NCBI GenBank assembly: GCA_002269645.1 | Contig: NIVC01004963.1 | Coordinates: 1-30,006, forward strand | DNA: 30,006 nucleotides | Direction of reading: 5' to 3' | DNA from: Macrostomum lignano | Taxonomy: Eukaryota | Part shown: piece after piece, positions 3,270 to 30,006 of the stretch | Numbering within the stretch: position 1 is the stretch's first letter | How the letters are laid out: every line of letters starts with the position of its first letter | The notes under the pieces: model-generated | Seen by the model: only the letters and a program-made list of their open reading frames with translations | What the model was told of the DNA's origin: nothing | Databases searched by the model: none | Program-made: the position numbers and the translations under genes

Positions 3270-3802
3270 CTGGTTGGCTCTCGCATCTGCAAGCTGGCCG
3301 CGTCAGGCGACCTCATCGGATTGAAATCGGCGACAGACGAGTTGGGGATCGGCTCAGCCGCCGGACCTGCCCTGTCAGTTGATGACCTGTTCGATTCGAA
3401 CGGCTTCAATCCGCTGATGCGCTCCGCGGCTATCGACCGTCGCTCGCCGTCGATTCAAGGCCAAGTCGAGTGTGCTCGACATCTGCTAGTGACCTGCGGC
3501 GCCGATCCGGATGCTAGCGGCGCCAAACAGGCGTCCGGATTTCGCGCTCTTCACCTGGCGGCCGAGACCGGCAACGAGGAGGTAGCCAGGCTGCTGCTGG
3601 CTGCGGGAGCCGATCGGGATGCTCAAACGGTGGACGATTGTTGGACGCCGTTGATGCTGGCAGTGATCGGCGATCAGCTGGGAGTTGCTCGGCTTCTGTT
3701 GCAGTGCCAGGCCGATGCTGCACTGCGCGACTCTTCGGGCCGCACGGCCGAGGACTGGGCGGTCAGGCTGGGTCGTTGCGAAGTGCTGAACGTTCTGCGA
3801 AG
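3270..3802 (+). CDS. Ankyrin-repeat exon of a Mind bomb-like E3 ubiquitin ligase (internal exon; upstream exons not found)
   Basis: Ankyrin motifs GFNPLMRSA, GFRALHLAAETGNEEVARLLLAAGAD, WTPLMLAVIGDQLGVARLLL and GRTAEDWA. Acceptor ttccag|CTG at 3269/3270 and donor AG|gtcagt at 3802/3803 (phase 2). Confidence 0.85.
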
Positions 3803-4587
3803 GTCAGTGGGGAGGCTGGTGAATGTTGAGCTTGGGGGGTACAATAGCGGCCAGTTTATTAGCGCTCACACAGATCGCACTGAGTCCATAAGTATAGTCT
3901 GAGTAATCCGCCTTATAGTTAGCTTAATTTGCTGTTATTAAACGGAAGAGATTACAAGGGTTTATATAAACTAACTTGAAAGTTTCTTACAAGAAATTTT
4001 TTCCATTTTTAAGGCCTCACATGCTTTCGCCTTAATATTCGACCGCTTCACCTGACTTATAACAAGCAACGTTTTCGCAAAACTGACTGTAGCTTGTTAG
4101 GCACCTTTATTGTACTCCCTTATACTTAAATGAGCCCCTTGAAGTTGCTTCCTGACTGGCTTTGCACACCTAGAGCTCAAGAGAAGGCCAGGTCAATCAA
4201 CTTTGCAGTCAGCGGCCACAGGAAGCCGCACAAAAGAGAAAAAGATTGAACGAAATTCAGTTCTATTCAGCATACGAGATTTCTAAAAGGTCATAGCATT
4301 CATAAAAAACAACAGAACTGTCTAAATTTTAGTTTCTTACTCCAATCAAGAGCTTTGAATTGAGTCTTTAAAGCTTCCTCGTGTACTTGAAGTTCTACAT
4401 CGATTCGGCCCAACGCTAATACACTACAAGAACCGTAATCCCCTGGAGAAAGCTCCGCTCTTACGAGGCAGTAGAAAGACAGAGAAGTCGCCGTTTTGAT
4501 AGTCCGCCTCCATTTAAAGCCCAAGCTGGAAATCTTTTTGTACGGTTGAAAAACCAGCCTCTTAAAGTCGATCACTAACCCCCACAG

Positions 4588-4957
4588 AGACCTATGCGAA
4601 GTGTGTCGCACGGACGATGTCGCAGTCACTTTCCGACCGTGCGGCCATCGAACAACCTGTCGCAGGTGCTGCGTCCTCTTGACCGTTTGCCTCTCCTGCA
4701 ACCGGCCCATTGAGATCAAGGAAGGCCAGCTGGAGGCTGCATCAGCTGATGATGAAGCTTCGTCAACCTCGACAGAGCCTGTACCCATCGATCAGCAACA
4801 GCTGGACGAAAGATTCCAGTGCCGCGTCTGCATGTCCTCCAGCGTCGGCGTTGCCTTCGGCTGCGGACATCAGGCCTGTCGCGGCTGCGCCAAGCAGCTG
4901 ACAGCTTGCCACATGTGCAGACGCTCCGTGGACACGAGAATTAGACTGTATAATTGA
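4588..4957 (+). CDS. Terminal exon with two C3HC4 RING fingers, Mind bomb (MIB1/MIB2)-like C-terminus
   Basis: Branch/acceptor cactaacccccacag|A joins the phase-2 donor in frame (LRR-DLCEVC). RING1 is CEVC..PCGHRTTCRRC..CLSC. RING2 is CRVC..FGCGHQACRGC..CHMCRRSVDTRIRLYN*, resembling the MIB C-terminus. QQQLDE precedes the last RING. Confidence 0.88.
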
Positions 4958-6605: not shown

Positions 6606-7383
6606 ATGGGAGCCGCGCATTGTGCAGCATACGTCAGCCTAGTTGCAGTCTGCTGCACCGCACTGACAGCTGCCGACTGCAGCTACCCAGCGGCTCAGCA
6701 GATGTTCGACCTGGCCCGGGTCTCTCTGGACGGCTGCGCCCAGCGACTGGCCAGCCTGGCGCACATCTTCCGCGACGGCACGCAGCAGGGCGCGAGCTCG
6801 CGAGAGCACCAACTGGTGGCCGCCCGATTCTTGACGGCCAATCTGGTGTTCACCGGACTCGCGACGCACGTTCGAACGTTGTCGGATGCTGCTACTAGCG
6901 AGGGCGGAGGCACAGACTACGAGGTTGTGGTTAAGCCGAACTGCTACGTGAAAGGCCGACTGCCACCTGGTGACGTCACCCTGACCGGGTTGACACCCTC
7001 GATGAAAAACGGACTCTGCCTGCCCGTGAGGGTCCAGGTTGGAGACTTCGGTATGTTCTTCGCCACCGTTCTGCCTTCTGGCCAGGTGGCTATCAACGAG
7101 AACGGATTCGCTGCTGAAGGACGCCAGCTGCAGACAGCCTGGCAGGCTCTGCAGTGTCGTCAGAACCAGGCCGAGGTGAAGCCGCTGCCAGTGGCGGGTG
7201 CGAGCAGAGGCTGCGGCCTGGCAATCAACAACTCCGCATCGGAGGACTGTGTGCTGACCCTCGCTGCGGCTAGGGAAGTCCTTCGTCGGAAATTCGTTTT
7301 TTACGAGGCCGATCTAAAGCTGGAATGTCAGCTGGGTCAGGATGCCGTGCTGAGCAGGTTGCTCAAGGGGCCAGCTGAGTTCG
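6606..7383 (+). CDS. Exon 1 of a secreted protein with an agrin NtA / TIMP-like OB-fold segment
   Basis: Hydrophobic signal peptide (AYVSLVAVCCTALTAA) followed by D-C. The motifs ANLVFTG, YEVVVKPNCYVKG, VTLTGL and C..VQVGDFGMFF parallel agrin NtA (ANVVLTG, YSCKVRVWRYLKG, VVISGF, C..VSTGDTRIFF; recalled, not aligned computationally). Donor TTCG|gtgagc at 7383/7384. Confidence 0.75.
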
Positions 7384-7388
7384 GTGAG

Positions 7389-7745
<357 letters not shown>

Positions 7746-7811
7746 CTGAGTAGCCAAAATTTTGATTTAGCACATCGCCTTCATAACTAAAGATGCTTTC
7801 TAAATCTTTAG

Positions 7812-10213: not shown

Positions 10214-11207
10214 TCACAAACCTTGAGCAGGCCAGATTGCTATTGTGAAGTTTCGAAGGACCCGAGGCCCGGATAGAGAGGCTTGGTGGGCCGCAGTTTG
10301 CCGACCCGTACATCCCGTACAACCATAATACGTTGACCATTGCTTAGCTACCATTGTGTTTATAAAATCGAACCTTGATTTTTAACGGCTAACCACAGAT
10401 CAAAAATCTTTATGCTTTATAAAATTGCTAGAGCATGGGTCGGATCAGGCGTTCCAGCTCTTCAACAGCGTTTCGGCTGGAACGAAAGCGCTGTACAAAA
10501 TCTCTATCGTCCTCGAAGAACGTCCTTGGAGACTCTCTCGACTTTGGACGAAGCAGGTTCTTCCTAGACGTTCCATAATTGAAGAAAGTCCATAAATTTT
10601 GCTTGGTTTTATCCAGCCTAGACTGGGCTAAAAGTTGCTTTATATCAAGCTAGTGGTAGACTGAGAGGAGCATCGTAAAATGGGAATTTGCATCAACATA
10701 TATAGAATAACTAAAATAACACTATATAAGACTAAAATAAATTGGTCCCAGAAGGTATGGTGGTCGGCAACTAAGTGCTTAAAACCATGCACTTTCTTTA
10801 GTGATCCTTGAGTGGCAATGAGTGCCGAGTGGCTATAAATATAGTTATTCCAAGTATATACCTCCATGTATAGCGTCCCGTGTGTGAAATATCAACACTC
10901 CAAGCTGAGACGCTGGAAATTAAAATATATTTAAATTAGTCACGAACGCTTGGACAGACTGTTTCATCCACGTTCCGATCTGATTGGCCAGTTTTGAGTG
11001 GCGTGGTCAAAGCTACACTCTCCAGCTCTTCCCAGCCATCCCAGGTTTTTAAGACCCACCCCCCTGTCCGACGACCTGACTGCTGTGCTGATTCGGATCA
11101 ACTGAAAAAGTGATACTGCGGAGTCGAATTTCCAATCGAAAGATCGAAGGCGAATTCTTGCTTAGGAGCTTCTTTTCCTTGTTCCAAAGGGACTGGAAGT
11201 AAAGGCG

Positions 11208-11342
11208 ATGGTTTTTCTTCTAGCAGCAAATCGACTTCTGCTTGCGTCTGGAGCTGTCGGCCTGTTGCTGGCGGTGTTGCTGGTTCAGGGGCCGCCCGGT
11301 TCGGAAGCCTACTTGAGGCTCATGGGTGGCCTTGAGTCCATG
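11208..11342 (+). CDS. Exon 1 (signal peptide) of a secreted cystine-knot / RFamide-tailed precursor
   Basis: ATG 11208, hydrophobic core LLLASGAVGLLLAVLLV, plausible cleavage at SEA|YL, donor ATG|gtgagc at 11342/11343 (phase 0). Confidence 0.8.
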
Positions 11343-11585
11343 GTGAGCCTGCTTGTAGTAGTTCACTCGGCCTGTCACTCATACTGTGCCTTTCACTCAG
11401 ACTGTCACTCTTTCTTTGTTGCTCTCTCCTCATCCTTCACTCTACCTCCCAATCCCTGCGCTTTACTCTGTTGGTCGCTCACAGACCCTCTTACTGTCTG
11501 TCAATACTCTGTACTCTATTTGCTGAAAACAATTTCAACAGAATTTAAGAGAATAGAAAATTCTCACAAAACCATTTCATTTTAG

Positions 11586-11670
11586 TGTCAGGGCCAAGGC
11601 GCTCATTGTTGGAGCGACGCCATCTGCTGCCAGGGACTCAAATGCCAGCGAAATTGGTGGCAGTACAAGC
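11586..11670 (+). CDS. Exon 2: inhibitor-cystine-knot-like core (CQGQGAHCWSDAICCQGLKCQRNWWQYK), absent from the ORF track
   Basis: Acceptor cattttag|TGT and donor C|gtgagt at 11670/11671 (phase 1). Spacing is C-x6-C-x5-CC-x4-C. Confidence 0.8.
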
Positions 11671-11936
11671 GTGAGTAGCGTACTCAGCTCTGGGAGTCTG
11701 AAGAGGAGAGGAATTCACTTGGGAGGCTTCGAAAGTTGTCAATTTTTCAAATTGAGTCGTCAAAGCAATCAATGGCTATGGCAGTCAGAGAGTGGACTGT
11801 CTAAGATCTGAGTCTCACGGAGAGATGTTTCAGAATGAGGAGTCAGATATTGGGGAGAGTTAGGAAGAGAGCTAGTCTGACACTCCGGTGAAGACGCAGT
11901 TTAGTTTAGTTCACAATTTCACGCTCACACATTCAG

Positions 11937-12217
11937 GCTCAATCAGCGGTGTCTGCCAGTCGCCCTCGGCCGAAATCCCCGGCGAGGAATGGTCAGCCCG
12001 CGTTTCAAGCTACAATGCGGCTCCGTCGTGGAGCCAGTGCCGCACCGACTGGGACTGCCCTCGAGGTCAGTGCTGCCACACCAGCCTGGCCAGCGGTCGT
12101 GGAATTCGTCGACGAATCTGCAGTCGGACAATCTGTCCGGGAGACGACGAGGACGCGGAAACGGATCGAACGGATGACCAATACGAGAACTACTATCCCA
12201 GGCGGTTCGGACGCTAG
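11937..12217 (+). CDS. Exon 3: sixth knot Cys, second six-Cys module, acidic spacer, C-terminal YENYYPRRF-G-R*
   Basis: Acceptor acattcag|GC completes CGC in phase 1 and enters the 11888-12217 frame. The module is C-x5-C-x4-CC-x14-C-x4-C. Stop is TAG 12215-12217. Confidence 0.8.
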
Positions 12218-12316
12218 CATCAGAGGCTCAAATCAAGTCCGTTATTCTTGAGAATCAATTTAAAACGCACACACACCATCGCACTTAAAAAGTTTGTGAT
12301 CTTTATGAACCGTACA

Positions 12317-12322
12317 AATAAA
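12317..12322 (+). promoter_or_regulatory. Candidate polyadenylation signal AATAAA of the cystine-knot gene
   Basis: AATAAA 100 nt downstream of the stop codon. Confidence 0.45.
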
Positions 12323-12424
12323 AAAACGATGGGACCGCGACCTTGGGACCGAATTCCCTCGATTGTTTGCGAGACAGTACCTTTGGTTTATTCAGTTTCA
12401 TGACGTCAAGCATTCAAAAGACCT

Positions 12425-12930
12425 TTGAAATTCACTTCATTAAAGATTCATGTTCTTGGATTTTCACTAACGTCCTAGAAGATCCGCTCACATCCTTAAA
12501 GATTCGCTCATGTCTTTGAATATTCACTCACGTGCTTAAAGATTCACTCAAGTACTTGAAGATTCACTCAAGTACTTGAAGATTCACTCACGTACTTGAA
12601 GATTCACTCACAGTCATCTGAGATTCACTCACAGTCATCTGAGATTCACTCACAGTCATCTGAGATTCACTCACAGTCATCTGAGATTCACTCACAGTCA
12701 TCTGAGATTCACTCACAGTCATCTGAGATTCACTCACAGTCATCTGAGATTCACTCACAGTCATCTGAGATTCACTCACAGTCATCTGAGATTCACTCAC
12801 AGTCATCTGAGATTCACTCACAGTCATCTGAGATTCACTCACAGTCATCTGAGATTCACTCACAGTCATCTGAGATTCACTCACAGTCATCTGAGATTCA
12901 CTCACGTACCACGAGATTCACATCCTTTGA
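12425..12930. repeat. Minisatellite: 14 identical 21-bp units (AGATTCACTCACAGTCATCTG, 12600-12893) flanked by diverged 20-bp relatives
   Basis: Exact 21-bp period. The flanking units are of the type GAAGATTCACTCACGTACTT. It explains the SSEIHSQ and MTVSESQ ORFs. Confidence 0.96.
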
Positions 12931-14523: not shown

Positions 14524-15245
14524 CACCCCAACTGCCAGCCGGAAAACTGCTAGCCGACAACTGCCAGCCGGAAAACTGCTAGCCGACAATTGCCAGCCGA
14601 CAACTGCCAGTCGACAACTGCAAGCCGACAACTGCCAGCCGACAATTGCCAGCCGACAATTGCCAGCCGAGAAAACTGCCAGCCGAGAAAACTGCCAGCC
14701 AACAAGTTCTAGCTAATTGAATCTACTGTAGCCTATATATATATATGTGAAGGAGAAGGCATTCAAATTTCGTATTTTAGGTAGCCTTTGCTCTTTCTTT
14801 GAAAGCTTTATTTAAGTAAAGTAATTTAATAGACTTATCTAGGATTGCGTCATATAGCAATCGAAATCGCAAATTAAATAATAAAGTAAATGAACTTTCA
14901 ATACAGAAATATTTACAATGGGCATTACAGAATGCCTTCTCCTTCACATATACTTCTAATGGAAATCTGAAAAAATTAGGGAAGGGAAGGGCGACATTTA
15001 ATGCTAACCCACAAGCCTTTTGCTAGCCAAACAGTTTCGTGCTTTTTACTTAGCTAATAAGTAGGCTACAGTAGATTCAATTAGCTAGAACAGTTTTCGG
15101 GCTGGCAGTTTTCTCGGCTGGCAATTGTCGGCTGGCAGTTGTCGGCTGGCAGTTGTCGACTGGCAGTTGTCGGCTGGCAGTTGTCGGCTGGCAATTGTCG
15201 GCTGGCAGTTTTCCGGCTGGCAATTGTCGGCTGGCAGTTGGGGTG
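14524..15245. mobile_element. Non-autonomous foldback/MITE-like DNA element with long inverted arms built from 13-bp tandem repeats
   Basis: Perfect 18-bp termini CACCCCAACTGCCAGCCG / CGGCTGGCAGTTGGGGTG. Inverted arrays of GACAACTGCCAGCC-type units at 14529-14702 and 15097-15240. A 30-bp perfect inverted pair at 14706-14735 / 15062-15091. No coding capacity. Confidence 0.85.
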
Positions 15246-20513: not shown

Positions 20514-23500
20514 ACAGCCCCACCCAGCCCTTACTCAGTTGCCAGAGACCACGAGTACTCGACCCCCCCCCCACTTGGCACCCAAACTCTGTGGCGCCAT
20601 AGCCAGTCAACTCAATATAGCCAATAGAAGGCCTAACGACAGTGGCTAAAAAACCTCATTGGATTGTGCTTGCTTAAAATACTAGAACTGATTAGTCCTG
20701 CCATTATGTGGCTCAAAATGTATAATTTGTTGTGTGGATTTTATAAACGAACTGACTTCTGGCATCTATCTATATGGATGTCAATGGATTTGACTCTGAT
20801 AACAAATGACAAGTGAATGATATATTGGCGTTACATTACTTACTCTATAATAAAACTATCTTTGCGCAGCAAAAATCAGCACATAACTCTCTAGGGAATT
20901 TAGTAAATTGACTTATTTTAGTTTAGTTTACGCATAATAGTTCAATGTATGCATTCAGCCCTGCCCAAACATCGCAGGCCACTCGTCGCCAAAAAAGCGG
21001 GTTGCCGGTCGCGGCTTACGCGGCGGCTGCCGCAAAGGCATCTGTGTCGGCACCTCGACCATCGATTTCACATTCTTGGTGGACGGCAAGCACTTCCAGC
21101 GCTGGCGCAAGTTCGCCGCCCATCTGGTCAACCGGCTGCGAGTCGCCCGCTATCGAGTCCGCGTCAACATGATCGTGGCCGGCACCCGGCCTCACTTGCT
21201 GTTCGGTTTCGAATCAGCCAAGTCGAGCATCATCTCCAAGATTAGGCGAACTCGATACGCCAGCAAGGCTGGGAACGTGGCGCTAGGCGAGGCTCTGTAC
21301 TTCTACAGGCGGCGCATTCTCAGGAAAGGACGCCGGTTCAGCGGCAAACTGATCGTGGTGCTCGCTAGCGTAGACTCGAACTCTGGACGCAGCGTGTCGA
21401 ATCAAGTTAGCTACCTAACGGCCAAGGGTGTCACATTCCTGCCAGTTATGGTGGGCTACGATGTGTCTCAGTGAGTTGCTCGTTTTACTGCTGCTATTAT
21501 GTTATTGAAATGCGAAAATTTAAACAGATTACGAGCGCAGAAAATTAATTTCATTCCTAAAGTGCAGCCACCAAGCGACTTGTGCAGTTAAATACTCTTG
21601 ATTTTTAACAGGGCATTTTGGAAGAGCCGCGCTACAGCTGGAAAGTACGTCTGGGTGCCCAAGTTTTCCAGTCTTCAGTTCGTGGTTGACGCCTTCATCC
21701 ACATGCACATCCGATGGAAGAGTGAGTTGACATTCGATTTTAAAAGTTGAATTTTGCGGCTAGATCAATAGCTTTCCAAAAATTCGTACCATTCGGCATT
21801 GAAAGATTGATAAAAAGTACGATTGCTTATACTCAGCAAAAGACAAAGGTGTTCAAGGATACACGCGTTATTAAATTAAAATTTCCACTGTTCTAATTTC
21901 CTGTCTTCATTCGTTTTCATCAAACTGTCTATCTCAAATCCTGTAGATTGAGAGATGCGCATTGAGTCCTGTGTCAGAATAAATGTCTATGGCCCAGAGT
22001 CTTGCCACTCAACTGAGAAACGCTCGAAATTCTTGCGAAGAAGGGGGGACACTCTTGTCTGCTGCTGAGTCTGAATGGATATTCAATTCTATTATTCTAA
22101 GCCGGGAATCCGTCGTTTACGAAAATAAGTCCCTACTTTTGAGGAGAATTAAACCGTTTAAAGCTATCAGTATAGCATTATCATATAGAATGATCAACCG
22201 AAAACGATCGTGTATATGATAATGCGCTTATGTCTATGATTTCAGAATTAAATAATAATCCAATATTTAAAGATCCAAGTGGCAAAAATTCTGAAACCAT
22301 AGACTTAATCTACCATTAGACGATTGAATTCTCCTCCGATTGAAAGTGAAATACTTTTACCATAGACTACGGACTGGCCACAAACAAACATAGTATATTT
22401 TTAGCATTGTAAAATTGCAATCGAATTTCATATATAATAATACTTATCATAGTTTATGGTTAAAAAGTAATCGGCCACACTCAATAGTCCTCTGCTCGCT
22501 TCGATCGCCTCGAGACCGTTAAATACAGTCTTGGACTTTTTAACCATAGAATGTGAATTAAACGGCGCTTATTCCCCAATCGTCCCGGTCAAATAAGTCT
22601 ATGGTGTTGTGTTGAAAAATTTATTTGTCCCGGGCGAAAAAAAGGATCTATATGACCATAAAAACGATCAGAACCATAGACAATTAACCATAGACTAATG
22701 CTGTCAGTCATGTTTGCAAATTTTATACTTCGTGTACAAGCCATTCACCTAAACTGATTAAAATTGTTTTCTGCTTTTTATGTCGATCAGAAAGACCGAG
22801 CCAAGTGGGGACAATACTTCTATATCTCCCGTTCATTCATTTTTCTATGGTCAAAACAACTTCGAACTTAACTCTCGAAGTTAATAATTTCTAAGTCATT
22901 CTGACGGCCATAGAAAAATGAATAAACGGGAGATGTTTTATATATTATTTATACAAAATCTAAACAATCTGTCTAAGGCTTATGTAATGTTTGGTACCAT
23001 TCCAATTGCCCGTAGGCATAGCAGTATCTTTTATAAATATATAATACACTGAAACAAGAAGATACCCTAGGCATAAACTCCAAAACATAGAGTATCTCCG
23101 AGTTAAAGTGTATTATTCTAATGTAGTACACTCTGCCTGTTCGCCTTGTCTTTTCCCTAGTGTTAAAACTTGCGGAGATTATCAGTAGCTTATCTCCGCT
23201 ACCATGGACAACGGAATTCTTTATTTGTTAACAGCGCATTATAAAATCTAGATATTTAGTTCGAGTTTATCTCCGGGGGAGAAATTAATCTCCGCTCCCT
23301 GTATAGATCCATCGCGGCTCACAGGCAGTGAATTGCATGCTAATAACAGACTTACTAAACCTAAACAATTTCAGTGAAAATGACCATGAGCAGCGTATTG
23401 AAGTGTCCCAAGCCGGTTCGGTACAAGACTCCCTGCAAGCACGGCTTCCGCAAAACCATGGAAATTGGCTTTGTCAAAACGCTCAACAAATGCAACCCGA

Positions 23501-26500
23501 TTACTAAAGTTATTAAAAGGAAGTCGTGCGGCTGCGAGAAAAGCCAGTGCTTCGCCAGCCAGGCTATGGAACTCATTCTGGTGATGCAGGCCTCGCAAGA
23601 TCTTGGCGAGTTGCACTTTGGCTACGAGAAGCAATTCATTATCTCTATGATTCAGAAGATGAAGATCGGCGCCAAGAGCGTCCGCGTCTCCGTTGTCCTG
23701 TTCTCTAGCCGTGCCAGCCTGGCTTTCCGTCTGACTGAGTACCACAGCCAATCAAGCGTCATCACCGCTATTAAGGGCCTCAAGCTGATGACTGGCAAGC
23801 ACCGAGCCATAGGCGATGCCCTCTTATTAGTTCGGGAACAGGTTCTAACCGATTCAGCTGAGCAGAGTGCCAAAATGCTCATCGTCATCACTTCGGGAGA
23901 TTCTAACTACGGCCGCAGCGTGGAAGTAGAGAGCAACAGACTGCAGGAGATGAGCGTTTCAATCCTGGTGATCGGTGTTGGGGCTGATGTTAATGATGCG
24001 TCCCTGCAGGTTATCAGCACCGTATACATTCATATTCGCACCTGGATCAAGCTTAAGTACGCATACAAGTACGTACTTCGCATGCGCATCAGCTTCGTAG
24101 CCCAGCCAGCCGTCCATGGCGCTCTGAAGATTCGCTGTCCAAAGTATCGCCGAGTGCTGGTTAGCAAATGCGTTGCTGGCTATAAGAAGCGCATTGTCAA
24201 GTTCTACAAGATGGTTCGCAACACCTGCATGCCATTCAAGCAGGTGCACAAAGTTCGTTGCACCAATCGTAAGTGATCCGTTGAACTAAATTGGCGTGAA
24301 ATTTGATTTAAAAGGCTTATTACAGTACTGTATAAAACTAAAATATGCTTCTATCGATTACTTCCATATTACACCTACAGCTCCAGTCTGCAAAGAAGGC
24401 ACAAAGGTTCACATTGGAAAATGCAACCCTAAAACGCGCCTACGCGTTGTTACGCGAGTGCACACCTCCAAGATTCACGATTGCAGCCACAAAAAGTGCG
24501 TCTGGCGATGCAGCAAGCGGCTAGTCCGAAGGAAGCAGCCCTGTCGAAAGAGTAAGAATGTCGCTTAACTAGGCTAAATGATCAAATTTAATATCAATAT
24601 TATGCCACTTTCAGAATTGCATCTTTCCCACACATTGCAGTTCGATGCATCAAGCGCCGGCTTATGATTGAAAAACGTTGCAGAAAATCAGGCTTTCGTA
24701 GAATCTTCTGGGGATTCTACAGTACAACCCGCGGCAGTTGCAAGCGAGTTCGCATCAAGGTCATTCGAAAAGTTCCGTGCAGTGGCTGCTCCAAGCACCA
24801 GATTCGAATCTTTCACATAACTGTTGGGCGCAAGTGCACTGGAGGTAGTAAAGCGATCTACTCTAGTTTCTACGCCTCACACAAAGGCAGATGCAGCTAC
24901 CAGAGACTGCATGTTACTAAACGGCGATGCGTTTTGAAAAAACGTTGTCCAAGAAAGGCCAGGATCCAAATCGAGACCCAATGTCTCCGTAAAGGAAGCC
25001 GTTATCGCGGCGTGTATTGGACGTACTTAACAAGACTGCAACCTGCCGGTCCATGCGTTCGAGTTCATGGAAAATTAGTTCGACTGATCCCCTGTGGTGG
25101 ATGCACCACTAAGCAACGTAGCTACCAGCATGTAACCACGGGAAAAGCCTGCAAAAGCGGCTTCATTACCAGCTTCGTTACTGTCTATCAGGGCGAGGAA
25201 TCCAGGCGGTGCCACAAAACTCGAGTGGTTATCCGAAAGCGAAATTGTAAGAAATTTAAGTTAAAAAACATGAATGAAACTGTTATTAGAATTTACAGCT
25301 TTTTCTCAAAAACAGCCAAACAACTAATACAAATCCGTTTAAATATTTTAGGCAAGTCTTGCAAAAAGGATACGACGAAAACAACACCGTGCATTCGAGG
25401 ATATAGAAGAACCATCCGAATTCACTTCACGGTCAAAGGAAGTAAATGTGTGCCTCACAAGACTTTGATAAAGAAAGTCAAGTGTGGTGAGGAAAAACAC
25501 GGCTGCAAACCACCGCGCAAAGTCCACACGCGATGCTCGGCTGGGCACAAGTACTCCTACACCACTACGTATTACTACAAGAAGAAGAAGGTTTGCACCG
25601 GTCTGGTTGTTCCGCCAAGTCGCACCTGCAGCAAGGTTGCCGACCTCGTGTTCGTTCTGGACTCTTCGACCAGCATTCACGACGCCGATTTTGCCAAAGA
25701 ATCTCGCTTTGTTCAGCACATCGTTCGCAGGATGGGCGTATCTCCGACTGGCGTTCGCGTTGCTGTTGTCACTTATTCGACCAGACCGAAACTCGTGTTC
25801 AACTTGGACAAGTACAAAACCAAGTCGCAGGTTCTGGCCGCCATGTCGAAGCTTCCACGAGACGAGGGAATCACAATGACTTATGCGGCTATCGACCTTG
25901 TCAACAGTGACATCTACCCGAAGAGACGAGCTGGAGTCCCGTTCATTGTCGTGGTCATCACTGACGGCAAGAGCACGATGGGTGACCCCGTCGCCTCGGC
26001 TAAAGTCTTGAAGAAAAGGGCGCCCGCTTTGTCTCTGTCGGAATCTACAACCCCGACCCAAGCGTGACCGACAAGATTAATCCGTAAGAATACATTTCTT
26101 AAACTGTATTACAGAACATAGGTTACCTGATTCAAATAAGACATTATAAGCGAAGCATGCTTGCTTTCGAAATCTACTGCTGCAGGGCTGAACTAAAGGG
26201 CATCTCAAGCAAAGGAAGATTCTGGCGAGCCGGAAACTTTAACAAGCTTGATTCCATCGTCAGCAGCGTCGTTCGGGAAGTGTGCACAGGTAGGAGAACG
26301 GACACATGCTAGATGCTGGTCTGATGCTTAATAACTTGTAATTTACAATTTACAACTTCAGACATGGGAAAATCAAAATCAAAGTCAGGAGGAAAACGGG
26401 TGTGCAAGATAATCTGCGTGAAGAAGCGCAAGATTTCTGCAAAGAAGATTTGCAGGAAGGACTGCTCGAGCAGGACTCTCATCCGTCACTGCAAGAAGCA

Positions 26501-29500
26501 CAGGGCCTATCGCGTGTTTACTCGAGTCACCTACCGGTGGAACGGAAAGAAATGCGTTCCCAAGAGCCGGAAGGTCATCAAGAAGATCCGGTGCCGTAAG
26601 TAAATGCACTCGTGAAAAACGAGTATATTAATACCTTTTGCACCTTTGTGCCCCAGGCGTGACTTGCAACGCCATTGGCGCATGTTAAGAGAAGCCGAAT
26701 CCAAATATTAGATTATTCGTAACTATGCTAAGTGATTATTCGCTTTCGCCTTGATTGCAGCTCCGAGAACTTGTCCGAAAGCCAAGATCATCCGCAAAGA
26801 GTGCAAGCCTGGCAGGGCGAAGAGCGTCACGACGCACATCTTCTACACGTCGCGTGTGAAGTGCACGATGTCTCTGCCGCCTCGTTGCACGCAGCACTGC
26901 ATCAAGAAGGTGAAGCGCTCGGCCGTTCCGTGCAAGAAAATCAAGTGCAAGGGCGACAAAGACCACGTGACCAAGTGCGGCGGCAGTCGTCGCTATCGCG
27001 TTGTCGTCACAATCAAGTACATCCAAGTAAAAGGCGTCTGCAAGAGGCGCAAGACCACCAAGCGCTATCCGTGTCCGGTCAAGTGCCCAAAGACTCAGAC
27101 CATCATAAGGCCTTGCAAAAAGGGTCGCAAGTTCTCTGTGAAGTCCATCATCAGCTACACCGTTCGTCGCGCGTGCGTTCACAAGGGCAAGTGCACAGTG
27201 AAGTGCGTCAGACGAGTTCTGCGATCGCGAAAGCGGTGCAAAACGCGTCCGCCAGATCGTCGCTGCAAGCAGCCTCCGCCCTTCTGGACCAAGTGTCGCA
27301 AACACTCTGCATACAAGTACCAGATCAAGGCGCTCTACAGGAATGTTCGCGGAACTTGTGTCATCTACAAGCGAGAGACAATTGCCCGACTTCTTTGCCG
27401 TAAGTAGCTCGTTCCTTGACAAGTAGCAAGGGTAGCTAATCTACTCGTCAAAATAGAAGTTTCAAAACCAGGGTTTATATCTGCTTATTGAATTAATATT
27501 TTAGCACCTCGCAAGTGCCCGAAGACGAGAGTAACCAAAACGAAGTGCACAAAGGGAGTCAGGCACAAGGTCACCACTACGATTTTCTACTCTGGTAAGA
27601 TTGTGTGCAGCAAGAAGAAGCCGATCGTATGCCGACAGGTGTGCACAAAGCGAGTGACCAAGTCTGGTGTCCCGTGCTTTCACATCGTGTGCGACGAGGC
27701 CAAGAAGGTCAAGCTTACCAAGTGCGGCGGTAAGAGGCGCTACCGATCCGTCATCACTACCTGGAATACACGAGTCGGAAAGAAGTGCAGGAAGCACAGG
27801 ACCGTCAAGCACTATCCGTGCCCAGTGGTTTGCCCGAAGAGGTCCAAGACCATCAAGCGAACTTCGTGCGGCAAGGGCAGGAAGTACCGGACTCTCACGA
27901 TCGCGACTTCCACCGTTAAGAAGAGGTGCAGCGGCCGTATCTGCACACTGCACTGCATCCGCAAGCTGATCCACTCTCGCGTGTTGTGTCCGAAGCCGCC
28001 ACATCGCTGCAGGAAGCCGCGCAAGGTGCACGTCCGATGCTCGAAGAAGAACTCACACTCGTACATCATCACCTATTACTACGTGAAGAAGCGAGTGTGT
28101 CACCGTAAGTCCCAATGCCTAAAACGTTTTGCAACCAATTATTTTAGTTCGCAATGGTTTACAAGCATACCTTACTTTAAACGAATGCACAACTGTTTCT
28201 CAGGTGCTTTGAAGTCTGGAAAAGCGCGCCGCTGCAAGATTGTGTGCGTGAAGAAGCACAAGCGGTCAGCCAGGAAGCCGTGCAAGAAGCGCAAGTGCCG
28301 ATACCAGCTATCCTACCACACCACCAAGTGTGTGCACAACTTCCGAACCATCACAACGAAGTACCGCACTCGGGTCCACGGACGCTGTGTCTGGCGACGA
28401 AAATCCGTGCGTCGCGTCCGCTGCTCTGGCTGCTCGTCCCACCAGATTCACTACCACAAGACGACGGTCGGCAGCAAGTGCAAGGCTGGACGCACGCAGA
28501 CCTTCCTGAACTTCTACGAGTCGCGCAAGTACAAAACCGGCTGGGTGTGTCACAAGAAGAAAGTCCAGGTGTCCATCATTAAGTGCAAGTGCAACAGGAA
28601 GCCTCTGCTGCTCCTGGACAAGAAGTGCCGCAAGGGCTACAGGAAGCTTACCAAGGTGGTGTTTATCGATCGCGGCGGCAAGTGCATTAGGAAGCAGACT
28701 GTCACTAAGAAAAAGTGCAAGATCATCAAAATCCATTGCGATCCGGCAATGATTGTGAAGAAGTGCACTAAGCACGCGGCTTACCGACTGTTCCTGCAAA
28801 TCAGCTACAGGCTGGTCGACGGAAAGTGCCGCAAACACCGCACAAGGATCGTCAAGAAGCAGCCTTGTCGTAAGTATTGATAATCATGCTTTTTAAGTAC
28901 GCTCTTAAGTAAGTGTTCTAGTTTCCCTAAATGATATCTCATTCTTTGATCAAAATGTAAACACAATGCAGCACCAAGACGCTGTCCGAAGGCCAAGACA
29001 ATCCGCACAAAGTGCAAGCCGGGAGTCGTCAAGCGAGTCACGACGCACATCTTCTACACGTCGCATGTCAGGTGTACAAAGTCGAAGCGGCCTCGTTGCA
29101 CGCAGCACTGCATCAAGAAGGTGAAGCGCTCGGCTGTTCCGTGCAAGAAAATCAAGTGCAAGAAGGACAAGGACCACGTGACAAAGTGCGGCGGCAGTCG
29201 TCGCTATCGTGTTGTCGTCACCATCAAGTACACCGAAGTAAAAGGCATCTGCAAGAAGCACAAAACCACCAAGCGCTATCCGTGTCCGATCAAGTGCCCG
29301 AAGACTCAGGTCATCCGTAAACCCTGCTCCAAGGGCAAGTCGCACAGCTTGTTCGAGGTCAAGTCCATCATCAGCTACACTGTTCGTCGCTCGTGCGTTC
29401 ACAAGGGCAAGTGCACCGCAAAGTGCGTCAGACACGTGGTTAGCAAGAAAAAGCCTTGCCCACCAGTCCCTACTCCGTGTAAAGTTAAGGCCGTGCTCAA

Positions 29501-29610
29501 GCGCTGCAAGAAGCACTCCGCCTACAAGTACTTGATCGAGGTTTACTACAAGCGAATTCGCGGACGCTGTGTACCGCTGAAGCGTATCACGAAGAAGAGA
29601 CTCCCATGCC
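18318..29610 (+). CDS. Gene span (3' incomplete): giant secreted Lys/Arg/Cys-rich modular protein with three VWA domains, at least 14 exons, about 2,050 aa in window
   Basis: Phase-consistent GT-AG chain: 18318-18422, 19047-19197, 20978-21470, 21612-21721, 23375-24268, 24381-24551, 24641-25246, 25352-26083, 26186-26289, 26362-26595, 26761-27399, 27505-28104, 28204-28869, 28972-29610. It needs one -1 correction near 26017. The last exon ends in a donor, so no stop is identified. Confidence 0.8.
18797..18907. repeat. Degenerate 12-bp tandem repeat (TCTTAGATCTAG-like) in intron 1
   Basis: cttagatatggtcttagatatggtcttagatctagtcttatatctaatcttagatctagt. Confidence 0.7.
19047..19197 (+). CDS. Exon 2: acidic pro-region
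   Basis: Acceptor ttgcgcag|CAA, QMLENMNDAIEVPDSIELDGNPGAFADSINEIEAEDEGVDDLAAKAISRH, donor G|gtgagt (phase 1). Confidence 0.75.
19507..19843 (-). mobile_element. 5'-truncated non-LTR retrotransposon 3' end (CCHC knuckle, I/Nimb-like) with (TAAG)n tail and 13-bp target-site duplication
   Basis: The minus strand reads CSEECPFCLSGVENAEHFIRECSAFTRDR, then LCHLVHYLRATG* in another frame. ACTTACTTACTT is at 19511-19522. TGCGCCCCTGATG is repeated at 19494-19506 and 19844-19856. Confidence 0.78.
20473..20512. repeat. (GA)n dinucleotide microsatellite
   Basis: Direct reading, with one AA interruption. Confidence 0.95.
20978..21470 (+). CDS. Exon 3: KKR site and degenerate, basic VWA domain 1
   Basis: Acceptor atcgcag|GC fits phase 1 (a phase-0 acceptor at 20958 also exists). 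It reads DFTFLVDG..VRVNMIVAG..ALGEALY..KLIVVLAS..GVTFLPVMVG. Donor CA|gtgagt (phase 2). Confidence 0.75.
21612..21721 (+). CDS. Exon 4: end of VWA1 (QAFWKSRATAGKYVWVPKFSSLQFVVDAFIHMHIRWK), absent from the ORF track
   Basis: Acceptor ttttaacag|G fits phase 2. Donor A|gtgagt (phase 1). Confidence 0.75.
22824..22934. repeat. Short inverted-repeat (MITE-like) structure in intron 4
   Basis: 22824-22852 versus 22906-22934 match at 27 of 29 nt as an inverted pair. An inner pair AACTTCGA / TCGAAGTT is also present. Confidence 0.7.
23375..24268 (+). CDS. Exon 5: Cys/Lys module, VWA domain 2 (no MIDAS Asp), Cys/Lys module
   Basis: Acceptor aatttcag|TG. Reads ELILVMQASQD..VRVSVVLFS..IGDALLLV..KMLIVITSGDS..VSILVIGVG. 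Donor C|gtaagt. Confidence 0.88.
24381..24551 (+). CDS. Exon 6: one six-Cys basic module
   Basis: Acceptor acctacag|CT and donor A|gtaaga, phase 1-1. Confidence 0.8.
24641..25246 (+). CDS. Exon 7: tandem Cys/Lys/Arg modules
   Basis: Acceptor cattgcag|TT enters the 24664 frame. Donor T|gtaaga, phase 1-1. Confidence 0.8.
25352..26083 (+). CDS. Exon 8: basic modules and canonical VWA domain 3 (MIDAS intact), with an apparent -1 frameshift near 26014-26020
   Basis: Reads DLVFVLDSSTS..VRVAVVTYS..GITMTYAAI..IVVVITDGKS. After the shift it reads GARFVSVGIYNPDPSVTDKIN, with donor CC|gtaaga (phase 2). Confidence 0.82.
26186..26289 (+). CDS. Exon 9: C-terminal helix of VWA3 (AELKGISSKGRFWRAGNFNKLDSIVSSVVREVCT), absent from the ORF track
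   Basis: Acceptor gctgcag|G fits phase 2 of the shifted frame. Typical VWA end (EL..IS..F..L..I). Donor G|gtagga. Confidence 0.82.
26362..26595 (+). CDS. Exon 10: basic Cys modules
   Basis: Acceptor aacttcag|AC and donor C|gtaagt, phase 1-1. Confidence 0.85.
26761..27399 (+). CDS. Exon 11: four-module block, paralogue of exons 12 and 14
   Basis: Acceptor gattgcag|CT, donor C|gtaagt, 639 nt. Confidence 0.88.
27505..28104 (+). CDS. Exon 12: older paralogue of the four-module block
   Basis: Acceptor attttag|CA, reads PPRKCPKTRVTKTKC..TKCGGKRRYR..YPCPVVCPK, donor C|gtaagt. Confidence 0.85.
28204..28869 (+). CDS. Exon 13: basic Cys modules, partly paralogous to exons 7 and 10
   Basis: Acceptor tttctcag|GT, contains CSGCSSHQI (exon 7 has CSGCSKHQI), donor C|gtaagt. 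Confidence 0.85.
28972..29610 (+). CDS. Exon 14: recent duplicate of exon 11; the gene probably continues beyond it
   Basis: Acceptor aatgcag|CA, 639 nt, shares long identical stretches with exon 11, donor C|gtaagt at 29610/29611. Confidence 0.88.
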
Positions 29611-30006
29611 GTAAGTTTTAGTCTCTTGTTTTTGCAAACTATTTGTTATTTCAAACTGTAAGAAATGCAATTGTTCATTCAATTGCTGTTTGATTTATTT
29701 AAGCACTTTCACTAAATCTGTAACTTCTAAGTATTGTACCTGAGACATGTTTTCAGGGTGATGGGTTTCTTGTTCTTTCAGCTCTTGTATTTTGTTTTCG
29801 ATTCTTGAATCCAGAAGATTCAAAGTAATGAGATGAAACAATAGTTTTCGATTGAGCACTATAAAAAACTCTATTGACGAACGCAAAACTTTGTTTAACA
29901 TAAGACCCATCTGTATGTGACGAAAAATAATAGAATAGTTAATTAAGTTTCAGAAAATCTTTTCAAGGAAATCCAACTTATTGCAGAAGTTTTCGAGAGT
30001 ATCTGA

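Follow-up and report, generated by a model that had tools for sequence, protein, structure and literature searches.

Inhibitor cystine knot (ICK) peptides are best known from venoms, and the double-ICK toxins, namely Xt3a of a remipede (7rz3) and the spider toxin DkTx (6cuc), are secreted single chains in which two tandem three-disulfide modules are joined by a linker. Outside venom, the arthropod agatoxin-like peptides are neuroendocrine, amidated ICK peptides of non-venom tissue. Here we describe a gene of the free-living flatworm Macrostomum lignano whose product is predicted to have the same overall layout as the double-ICK toxins. The gene lies at 11208-12217 on the forward strand of a 30,006-nucleotide stretch (contig NIVC01004963.1, positions 1 to 30,006, of assembly GCA_002269645.1), which was analyzed as a whole and is referred to below as the window. 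With moderate confidence, we read it as an expressed and annotated gene for a small, secreted, disulfide-rich protein that acts as one chain of two modules, and not as a prohormone that is cut into several peptides. Both knots of Xt3a share the pattern C-x6-C-x5-CC-x-GL-x-C...GVC with module 1 of the flatworm protein. Unlike those of the toxins, however, the two flatworm modules do not resemble each other, and in module 2 loop 3 is long and loop 4 is short. The flatworm protein also adds a conserved N-terminal hexapeptide and a processed, Tyr-containing tail of 23-24 aa, the animal is not venomous, and homology to the toxins is not demonstrable beyond the short knot motif. The agatoxin-like peptides are single eight-Cys knots of about 40-45 aa, and no sequence match between them and the flatworm protein was found.

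When the window sequence was read from 10900 to 12600 and spliced, three exons were obtained, all of whose borders follow the GT..AG rule (Table 1). The spliced coding sequence of 501 nt is in frame and encodes a product of 166 aa, MVFLLAANRLLLASGAVGLLLAVLLVQGPPGSEAYLRLMGGLESMCQGQGAHCWSDAICCQGLKCQRNWWQYKRSISGVCQSPSAEIPGEEWSARVSSYNAAPSWSQCRTDWDCPRGQCCHTSLASGRGIRRRICSRTICPGDDEDAETDRTDDQYENYYPRRFGR, which matches GenBank PAA46256.1, a hypothetical protein of M. lignano (BOX15_Mlig031025g2), with 100% identity along its entire length. The initial annotation, which was made from the letters of the window, had arrived at the same exons and the same product, and it had rightly noted that a mechanical list of open reading frames (ORFs) does not contain exon 2 in the correct frame. 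It also called the gene cryptic, and this description has to be dropped because the gene was already annotated (Mlig031025.g2) and its model is known in GenBank, as a hypothetical protein. The Mlig_3_7 annotation was produced as a genome-guided RNA-seq transcriptome assembly with StringTie and TACO (PMC5730564); hence, the splice junctions of PAA46256.1 are likely transcript-derived, which for this particular model we infer from the naming scheme. UniRef labels PAA46256.1 as a 'WAP domain-containing protein', and its 90% cluster comprises a homeologue (PAA94324.1, P0003; 98% identical), a shortened model (P0002), and two older models of 164 aa, which carry the automatic names 'Calglandulin' and 'Prokineticin domain-containing protein'.

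The three-exon model was settled by a paralogue gene (locus L004), because both of its introns agree with those of the window gene in position and phase. Intron 1 of the paralogue (3111/3259, phase 0) is located directly before the first Cys codon, and intron 2 (3334/5890, phase 1), which is 2.5 kb long, lies within the Arg codon of a YKR motif. Comparison of the window with the homeologous locus L001 showed that the exons are 97-99% identical (97-98.8) and the introns 94-96% (94% for intron 1), with a 251-bp indel in intron 2. Seven of the 10 exonic differences are synonymous and three are non-synonymous, two of the latter being located in the signal peptide, and exon 3 accounts for four synonymous differences and one non-synonymous difference. 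The resulting pN/pS ratio was 0.13 for the whole coding sequence and 0.05 when only the mature part was counted (binomial p = 0.002), showing that the coding sequence is under selection. This ratio, together with the conservation of the introns and of the Cys residues, led us to reject a pseudogene or an annotation artefact.

The acceptor of exon 2 is a tandem at 11580-11592 (ttttAG/TGTCAG/G), in which the two AGs are 6 nt apart and the second occupies 11590-91. The two older 164-aa models (A0A1I8H1G5 and A0A1I8GXW5) take the downstream AG and consequently lack 'CQ', including Cys46, a residue that the family alignment shows to be kept in all relatives. Because Cys46 and the intron position directly before its codon are conserved in the paralogue, acceptor 11586 was favored over 11592, and the 164-aa splice form, in which the conserved Cys46 is gone and 11 Cys residues are left, was rejected as the main form.

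A third, nearly identical copy of the locus is present at positions 5569-6574 of L002 (NIVC01001112.1). It carries two single-base homopolymer deletions, in exon 1 and exon 3, which explain the odd 102-aa model PAA72121.1, this copy being the source of the shortened model P0002. The assembly is known to be redundant (PMC5730564), and the copy is probably a product of assembly redundancy or error and not a pseudogene.

Homologues were searched for with word-indexed searches using the protein and using its paralogue, with a profile of four sequences, with an exhaustive HMMER search of 1.84e9 representatives, and with a scan of metagenome contigs. The HMMER search yielded a single true relative, P0006, a protein of 149 aa with 38% identity (E 3.7e-11), which is the M. 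lignano paralogue Mlig005172g1/g2 (loci L004-L006) and bears the UniRef name 'Ixodegrin protein'. Two other matches, P0007 and P0008, which are low-complexity repeat proteins, were not accepted as relatives. With P0006 as the query, P0011 was obtained (154 aa, 59% identity to P0006), the ORF of which is uninterrupted (L003, 118-582) on a contig of 925 nt that had been assembled from run SRR28338164. This contig is most simply regarded as a transcript, apparently of another, presumably macrostomid species. The four-sequence profile search and the metagenome contig scan revealed no further relatives, and all searches together returned only M. lignano copies and the one contig from SRR28338164. 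Within the reach of these searches, the family thus appears to be restricted to Macrostomum-like flatworms.

All 12 Cys residues are conserved across the family alignment (12/12, Cys46 included). The Cys spacing in the family is 6,5,0,4,10/14 in module 1 and 5,4,0,14,3/4 in module 2, where the values 10 and 3 belong to the paralogues, and the modules are separated by a linker of 17-27 aa. In the window protein, the spacings are exactly as the initial annotation had read them, C-x6-C-x5-CC-x4-C-x14-C for module 1 (C46-C80) and C-x5-C-x4-CC-x14-C-x4-C for module 2 (C108-C140), with 27 aa in between. A motif, [YF][LI]R[LI]MG, stands right behind the signal peptides of the paralogues as well, with R..MG invariant; R-G is invariant in the long loop of module 2, and the pattern Y..YY is kept in the tail across the family. 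The strongest conservation in the alignment is seen in the Cys modules and the N-terminal motif, and not at the very end of the tail. The paralogue branch is unusually rich in Tyr in the presumed mature part (11/115 residues in P0006 and 15/116 in P0011).

Module 1 is knottin-like by sequence, as the initial annotation proposed. Its loop lengths are within the known ICK range, and a module-1 profile searched against all PDB sequences matched phi-xibalbin3-Xt3a, the remipede double-ICK toxin, with an E value of 7.4e-7, both knots of the toxin being aligned. The next approximately 25 ICK peptides, including the sea-anemone peptide AMS3/Ms11a, spider theraphotoxins, DkTx, purotoxins, and horseshoe-crab tachystatins, followed at E 0.03-6, so that the list is dominated by ICK peptides. 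When the matched segments were shuffled with the Cys residues fixed, the real score was reached by 1, 0, and 0 of 1000 shuffles (z 4.8-7.4). The likeness therefore exceeds mere Cys spacing, and the pattern eG.fC...CC.GL.C...GVC is shared. Several ICK families of Pfam also matched module 1 weakly (Toxin_12, E 0.011; Conotoxin_I2, E 0.017; Toxin_29, E 3.9). With single-domain ICK peptides such as theraphotoxins, Ms11a/AMS3, and tachystatins, module 1 shares the C-C-CC-C-C framework and a predicted C-terminal beta-hairpin. However, each of these individual matches is non-significant, no propeptide with a basic site precedes the flatworm knot, and the knot is embedded in a two-module protein of 130 aa.

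Module 2 is a second, distinct six-Cys module, which the initial annotation had also recognized. It fits the C-C-CC-C-C framework with loops of ICK range, and at the sequence level it matches nothing known and is an orphan. Its CxxDxDCxxGxCC-type start, together with the conserved free N-terminus, explains the automatic UniProt names; these features are shared with the prokineticin, astakine, and Dickkopf proteins and with WAP proteins, whose Cys number and arrangement differ. Nothing in Pfam exceeded its cut-off for any family member. WAP matched aa 106-122, about half of module 2, and the equivalent region of P0011 (E 0.015-0.02), which would suit a protein of the WAP ('four-disulfide core') type, either a protease inhibitor or an antimicrobial, in line with the UniProt name. 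However, this match amounts to 16 bits against the curated cut-off of 20.8 (PF00095) and covers only 17-19 of the 41 profile positions. In addition, module 2 has six Cys residues instead of eight and a 14-residue loop where WAP has three residues, and the PDB search with the module-2 profile gave no WAP structure. We thus consider a WAP protein very improbable.

Another alternative is a divergent ligand of the colipase fold (prokineticin, astakine, or Dickkopf), in which the free N-terminus would have the receptor-activating role of AVITGA in prokineticins. The conserved hexapeptide is located directly behind the signal peptide, module 2 opens with CxxDxDCPxGxCC followed by a predicted hairpin, and sister models were automatically named 'Prokineticin domain-containing' and 'Ixodegrin'. 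Dkk1 chains were also matched weakly by the module-1 profile (E 0.06-0.1), and Dkk, draxin, and MIT1 (E 2.7) occur among the non-significant Foldseek matches described below. Nevertheless, Pfam Prokineticin (PF06607) did not match at E <= 10, Dickkopf_N reached 9-15 bits against a cut-off of 25 (E 0.03-0.4), and the module-2 profile found no colipase-fold structure in the PDB. Furthermore, the 6+6 Cys residues with a variable linker of 17-27 aa do not form one contiguous 10-Cys domain, and the N-terminus YLRLMG is unrelated to AVITGA. A colipase-fold ligand is therefore quite improbable, and the likeness of module 2 to Dickkopf, prokineticin, and colipase modules suggested by the initial annotation received no significant support.

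The acidic tail ends with QYENYYPRRFGR directly before the stop codon, and PRRF-G-R-stop (12197-12217) is identical in the homeologue P0003; thus, the terminal F-G-R-stop that the initial annotation regarded as an amidation signal is indeed present. The paralogues P0006 and P0011 end differently, with ...GEYY[SN]RYYR[ST]SY-RKKR-S... and 5-9 residues past RKKR, and have neither Gly nor RF at this place; in both, the conserved RKKR is followed by a short C-terminal extension that is acidic or rich in Ser. The aromatic residue before the processing signal is nevertheless located at +24 from the last Cys in this gene, at +23 in P0006, and at +24 in P0011, and the signal that follows it is GR-stop in the first and RKKR in the other two. 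Because the distance is 23-24 residues throughout, the conserved feature appears to be C-terminal trimming at a fixed position after an aromatic residue.

The initial annotation had gone further and proposed a precursor with multiple products that releases an RFamide. Such a neuropeptide-type prohormone would be cut into a knottin, another Cys-rich peptide, and, from its C-terminus, an RFamide-like peptide, ...YENYYPRRF-NH2, with RFamide receptors or channels as the targets. The precursors of flatworm RFamide/FMRFamide-like peptides and NPF do have a signal peptide and a terminal Arg-Phe-Gly-basic motif in common with this protein, the R-F-G-R-stop end is the same in the homeologue, KR and RR motifs are present, and ICK peptides can be neuroendocrine, as in the case of the agatoxin-like peptides. 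Cleavage at RRR131-133 could also free a 31-aa peptide with the C135-C140 loop. However, RRR131-133, the only upstream polybasic site, falls within the conserved module 2, between its Cys IV and V, and the paralogues do not have it. A conserved YKR is present in knot 1, but it lies within a disulfide-bounded loop and has the look of a structural loop. The family alignment contains no conserved basic site for cleavage, either in the inter-module linker or between C140 and the tail, and this protein has no basic pair between C140 and the tail. Known RFamide precursors, in contrast, contain short peptides with basic sites on both sides and a conserved amidated end. In prohormones, the released peptide is usually the best-conserved part, whereas in this family the Cys modules and the N-terminal motif hold that place. 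Because ICK toxin precursors commonly carry C-terminal G-[KR] amidation signals, the G-R-stop by itself does not imply a neuropeptide.

The initial annotation had named orthologues lacking the RFG tail as evidence that would speak against its proposal. This applies in part, since the tail is lacking in the paralogues, which are the sole detectable relatives. Moreover, the ordinary RFamide propeptides of M. lignano are encoded by other genes, for example Mlig001796.g3, which yields YMRFa (PMC9234716). Taking the paralogue ends, the missing conserved upstream site, and the position of RRR inside module 2 together, we regard the RFamide prohormone as unlikely; the 'RFamide' end is probably no more than a C-terminus that is trimmed and possibly amidated, and not a separate neuropeptide. 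A relation to flatworm NPF, which ends with GRPRFa and has no Cys modules, was also considered and rejected, since Pfam Hormone_3 did not match, the tail motif PRRF differs, and NPF has nothing that corresponds to the Cys modules.

We thus favor the secreted two-module single chain, and its maturation would proceed as follows. The N-terminus is signal-peptide-like, with small residues at -3/-1 before Y35 as judged by inspection, in agreement with the secreted precursor of the initial annotation. Removal of aa 1-34 would free the conserved N-terminus [YF][LI]R[LI]MG. Module 1 would then fold as an ICK-type domain, and the variable linker would join it to module 2, putatively a second three-disulfide unit built around a beta-hairpin with the invariant R-G turn. 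The Tyr-containing tail would close with the aromatic residue, whose distance from the last Cys is conserved. For this gene and the homeologue, Arg166 would be removed and Gly165 converted to give a Phe164-amide, while in the paralogues furin-type processing at RKKR would leave Tyr as the free C-terminal residue. The predicted mature protein, residues 35-164, has about 130 aa with a computed mass of 14.86 kDa and a pI of 6.9. The modules carry charges of +3 and +5 and the tail -6, a pattern that is not conserved in the paralogues and was not used for the reading. Outside the cell, the protein would most likely act on a membrane target, as a stable ligand or as a blocker, by analogy with double-knot and modular ICK peptides, in defence or endogenous signalling.

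Several points weigh against this reading. Amidation is no more than possible, as read from the G-R-stop motif. A convertase could cut at RRR131-133, which would give a two-chain, disulfide-linked form or an amidated C-terminal peptide of 31 aa. The module-2 profile found no significant relative in the PDB, the best match being a DPY module of Dumpy (E 0.31). AlphaFold2 (AF2) models had a mean predicted local distance difference test (pLDDT) score of 62 from the single sequence and 50 from the four-sequence alignment, which is too poor to read the disulfide topology, so that the knot topology and disulfide pairing can be proposed only tentatively. A Foldseek search of the PDB with a low-confidence AF2 model likewise gave no match below E 0.07 and none that was significant. 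Finally, the searched supplements of M. lignano papers contained no expression-site, proteomic, or peptidomic records for the three gene ids, an absence that is uninformative. Both low-confidence AF2 models contain a hairpin at 64-66/78-81 in module 1 and another at 119-124/131-136 in module 2. The non-significant Foldseek list consists mostly of ICK toxins, with a TM-target of 0.7-0.75 over about 38 residues (0.71-0.75 for Pmu1a and poecitoxin-1a) and E at least 0.07, and also includes DkTx and Xt3a. Full-text literature searches for the gene and protein ids gave no paper, a single-cell atlas of M. lignano was not found, and searches of the literature for knottins in flatworms had no relevant result.

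A more specific possibility, which we find quite doubtful, is a flatworm-specific neuroendocrine double-knot ligand. In this case, the N-terminus [YF][LI]R[LI]MG and, in this paralogue, the Arg-Phe-amide would both be pharmacophores, and the stable knotted scaffold would present the RFamide-like end to RFamide-sensitive receptors or to channels of the DEG/ENaC type as an endogenous ligand. If this were true, a knottin and an RFamide terminus on one chain would be a combination not known to have been described before.

If the secreted two-module single chain is confirmed, the gene represents an uncharacterised, lineage-restricted family of secreted Cys-rich proteins under purifying selection in a flatworm that is genetically tractable by transgenesis and RNA interference. 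A protein in which an ICK-type knot is fused to an orphan six-Cys module, the free N-terminus is conserved, and the C-terminus is processed at a constant place is unusual, and an example from a non-venomous flatworm bears on the spread and age of the ICK scaffold outside venom. The analysis also corrects the misleading automatic names 'WAP domain-containing', 'Prokineticin domain-containing', 'Calglandulin', and 'Ixodegrin'. It opens no long-standing question, and the idea of a knottin plus RFamide prohormone is probably wrong. The features of the gene are collected in Table 1.

Table 1. Position of the gene features in the window
Feature	Position	Strand	Remarks
Exon 1	11208..11342	+	aa 1-45, ends in phase 0; ATG at 11208; donor ATG/gtgagc at 11342/11343
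Signal peptide (predicted), in exon 1	aa 1-34, nt 11208-11309	+	cleavage S-E-A/Y judged by inspection
Mature N-terminus YLRLMG (predicted)	aa 35-40, nt 11310-11327	+	motif kept in paralogues; GLESM then closes exon 1
Intron 1	11343..11585	+	243 nt, GT..AG, phase 0; ends right before the first Cys codon
Exon 2	11586..11670	+	85 nt; aa 46-73 and first base of Arg74; Cys I-V of ICK-like module 1; acceptor ttttag/TGT, donor AAGC/gtgagt
Intron 2	11671..11936	+	266 nt, GT..AG, phase 1; splits the Arg codon of the conserved YKR
Exon 3	11937..12217	+	acceptor attcag/GCT; stop TAG at 12215-12217
Cys VI of module 1 (C80)	11954-11956	+	exon 3; followed by the 27-aa linker
Module 2 (C108-C140)	12038-12136	+	exon 3
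Acidic Tyr-containing tail	aa 141-164, nt 12137-12208	+	exon 3
Gly165-Arg166	12209-12214	+	exon 3, directly before TAG
Poly(A) signal AATAAA (putative)	12317..12322	+	100 nt past the stop; pattern match

Approximately 250 bp past the stop codon of the gene, a 21-bp tandem array of about 21 copies occupies 12463-12909 (units AGATTCACTCACAGTCATCTG and TTCACTCACGTACTTGAAGA); the array is also present next to the homeologue in L001. This array gives rise to the long 'SESQMTV'/'EIHSQSS' pseudo-ORFs. Similarly, (TCTA)n microsatellites at 572-762 (48 copies) and 7394-7745 (88 copies) produce long 'SIYLSIYL' ORFs, and the second of them lengthens an otherwise unassigned ORF at 6606-7790, the first 258 aa of which have no Pfam match.

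Upstream of the gene, an ankyrin-repeat ORF (3321-3902, + strand; Ank_2, E 1e-30) and a RING-finger ORF (4601-4957, + strand; zf-C3HC4_3, E 2e-13) are probably exons of one E3-ligase-like gene. At the other end of the window, the plus strand of 20949-30006 contains long ORFs with VWA domains at 21076-21474, 23374-24276, and 24664-26067, interleaved with repeats very rich in Lys, Arg, and Cys and without a Pfam match (26751-27407, 27603-28880, and 29121-29621). This region looks like a large secreted repeat protein that extends beyond the window; its identification with the adhesive protein Mlig-ap1 was rejected because the domain content differs. More tandem arrays, with periods of 20, 48, and 14 bp, are present at 1392-1706, 2490-2835, 14529-14705, and 15091-15240. 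The two 14-bp arrays are reverse-complementary to each other (CAACTGCCAGCCGA and CAGTTGTCGGCTGG) and about 400 bp apart, and they may be the ends of an inverted-repeat element.

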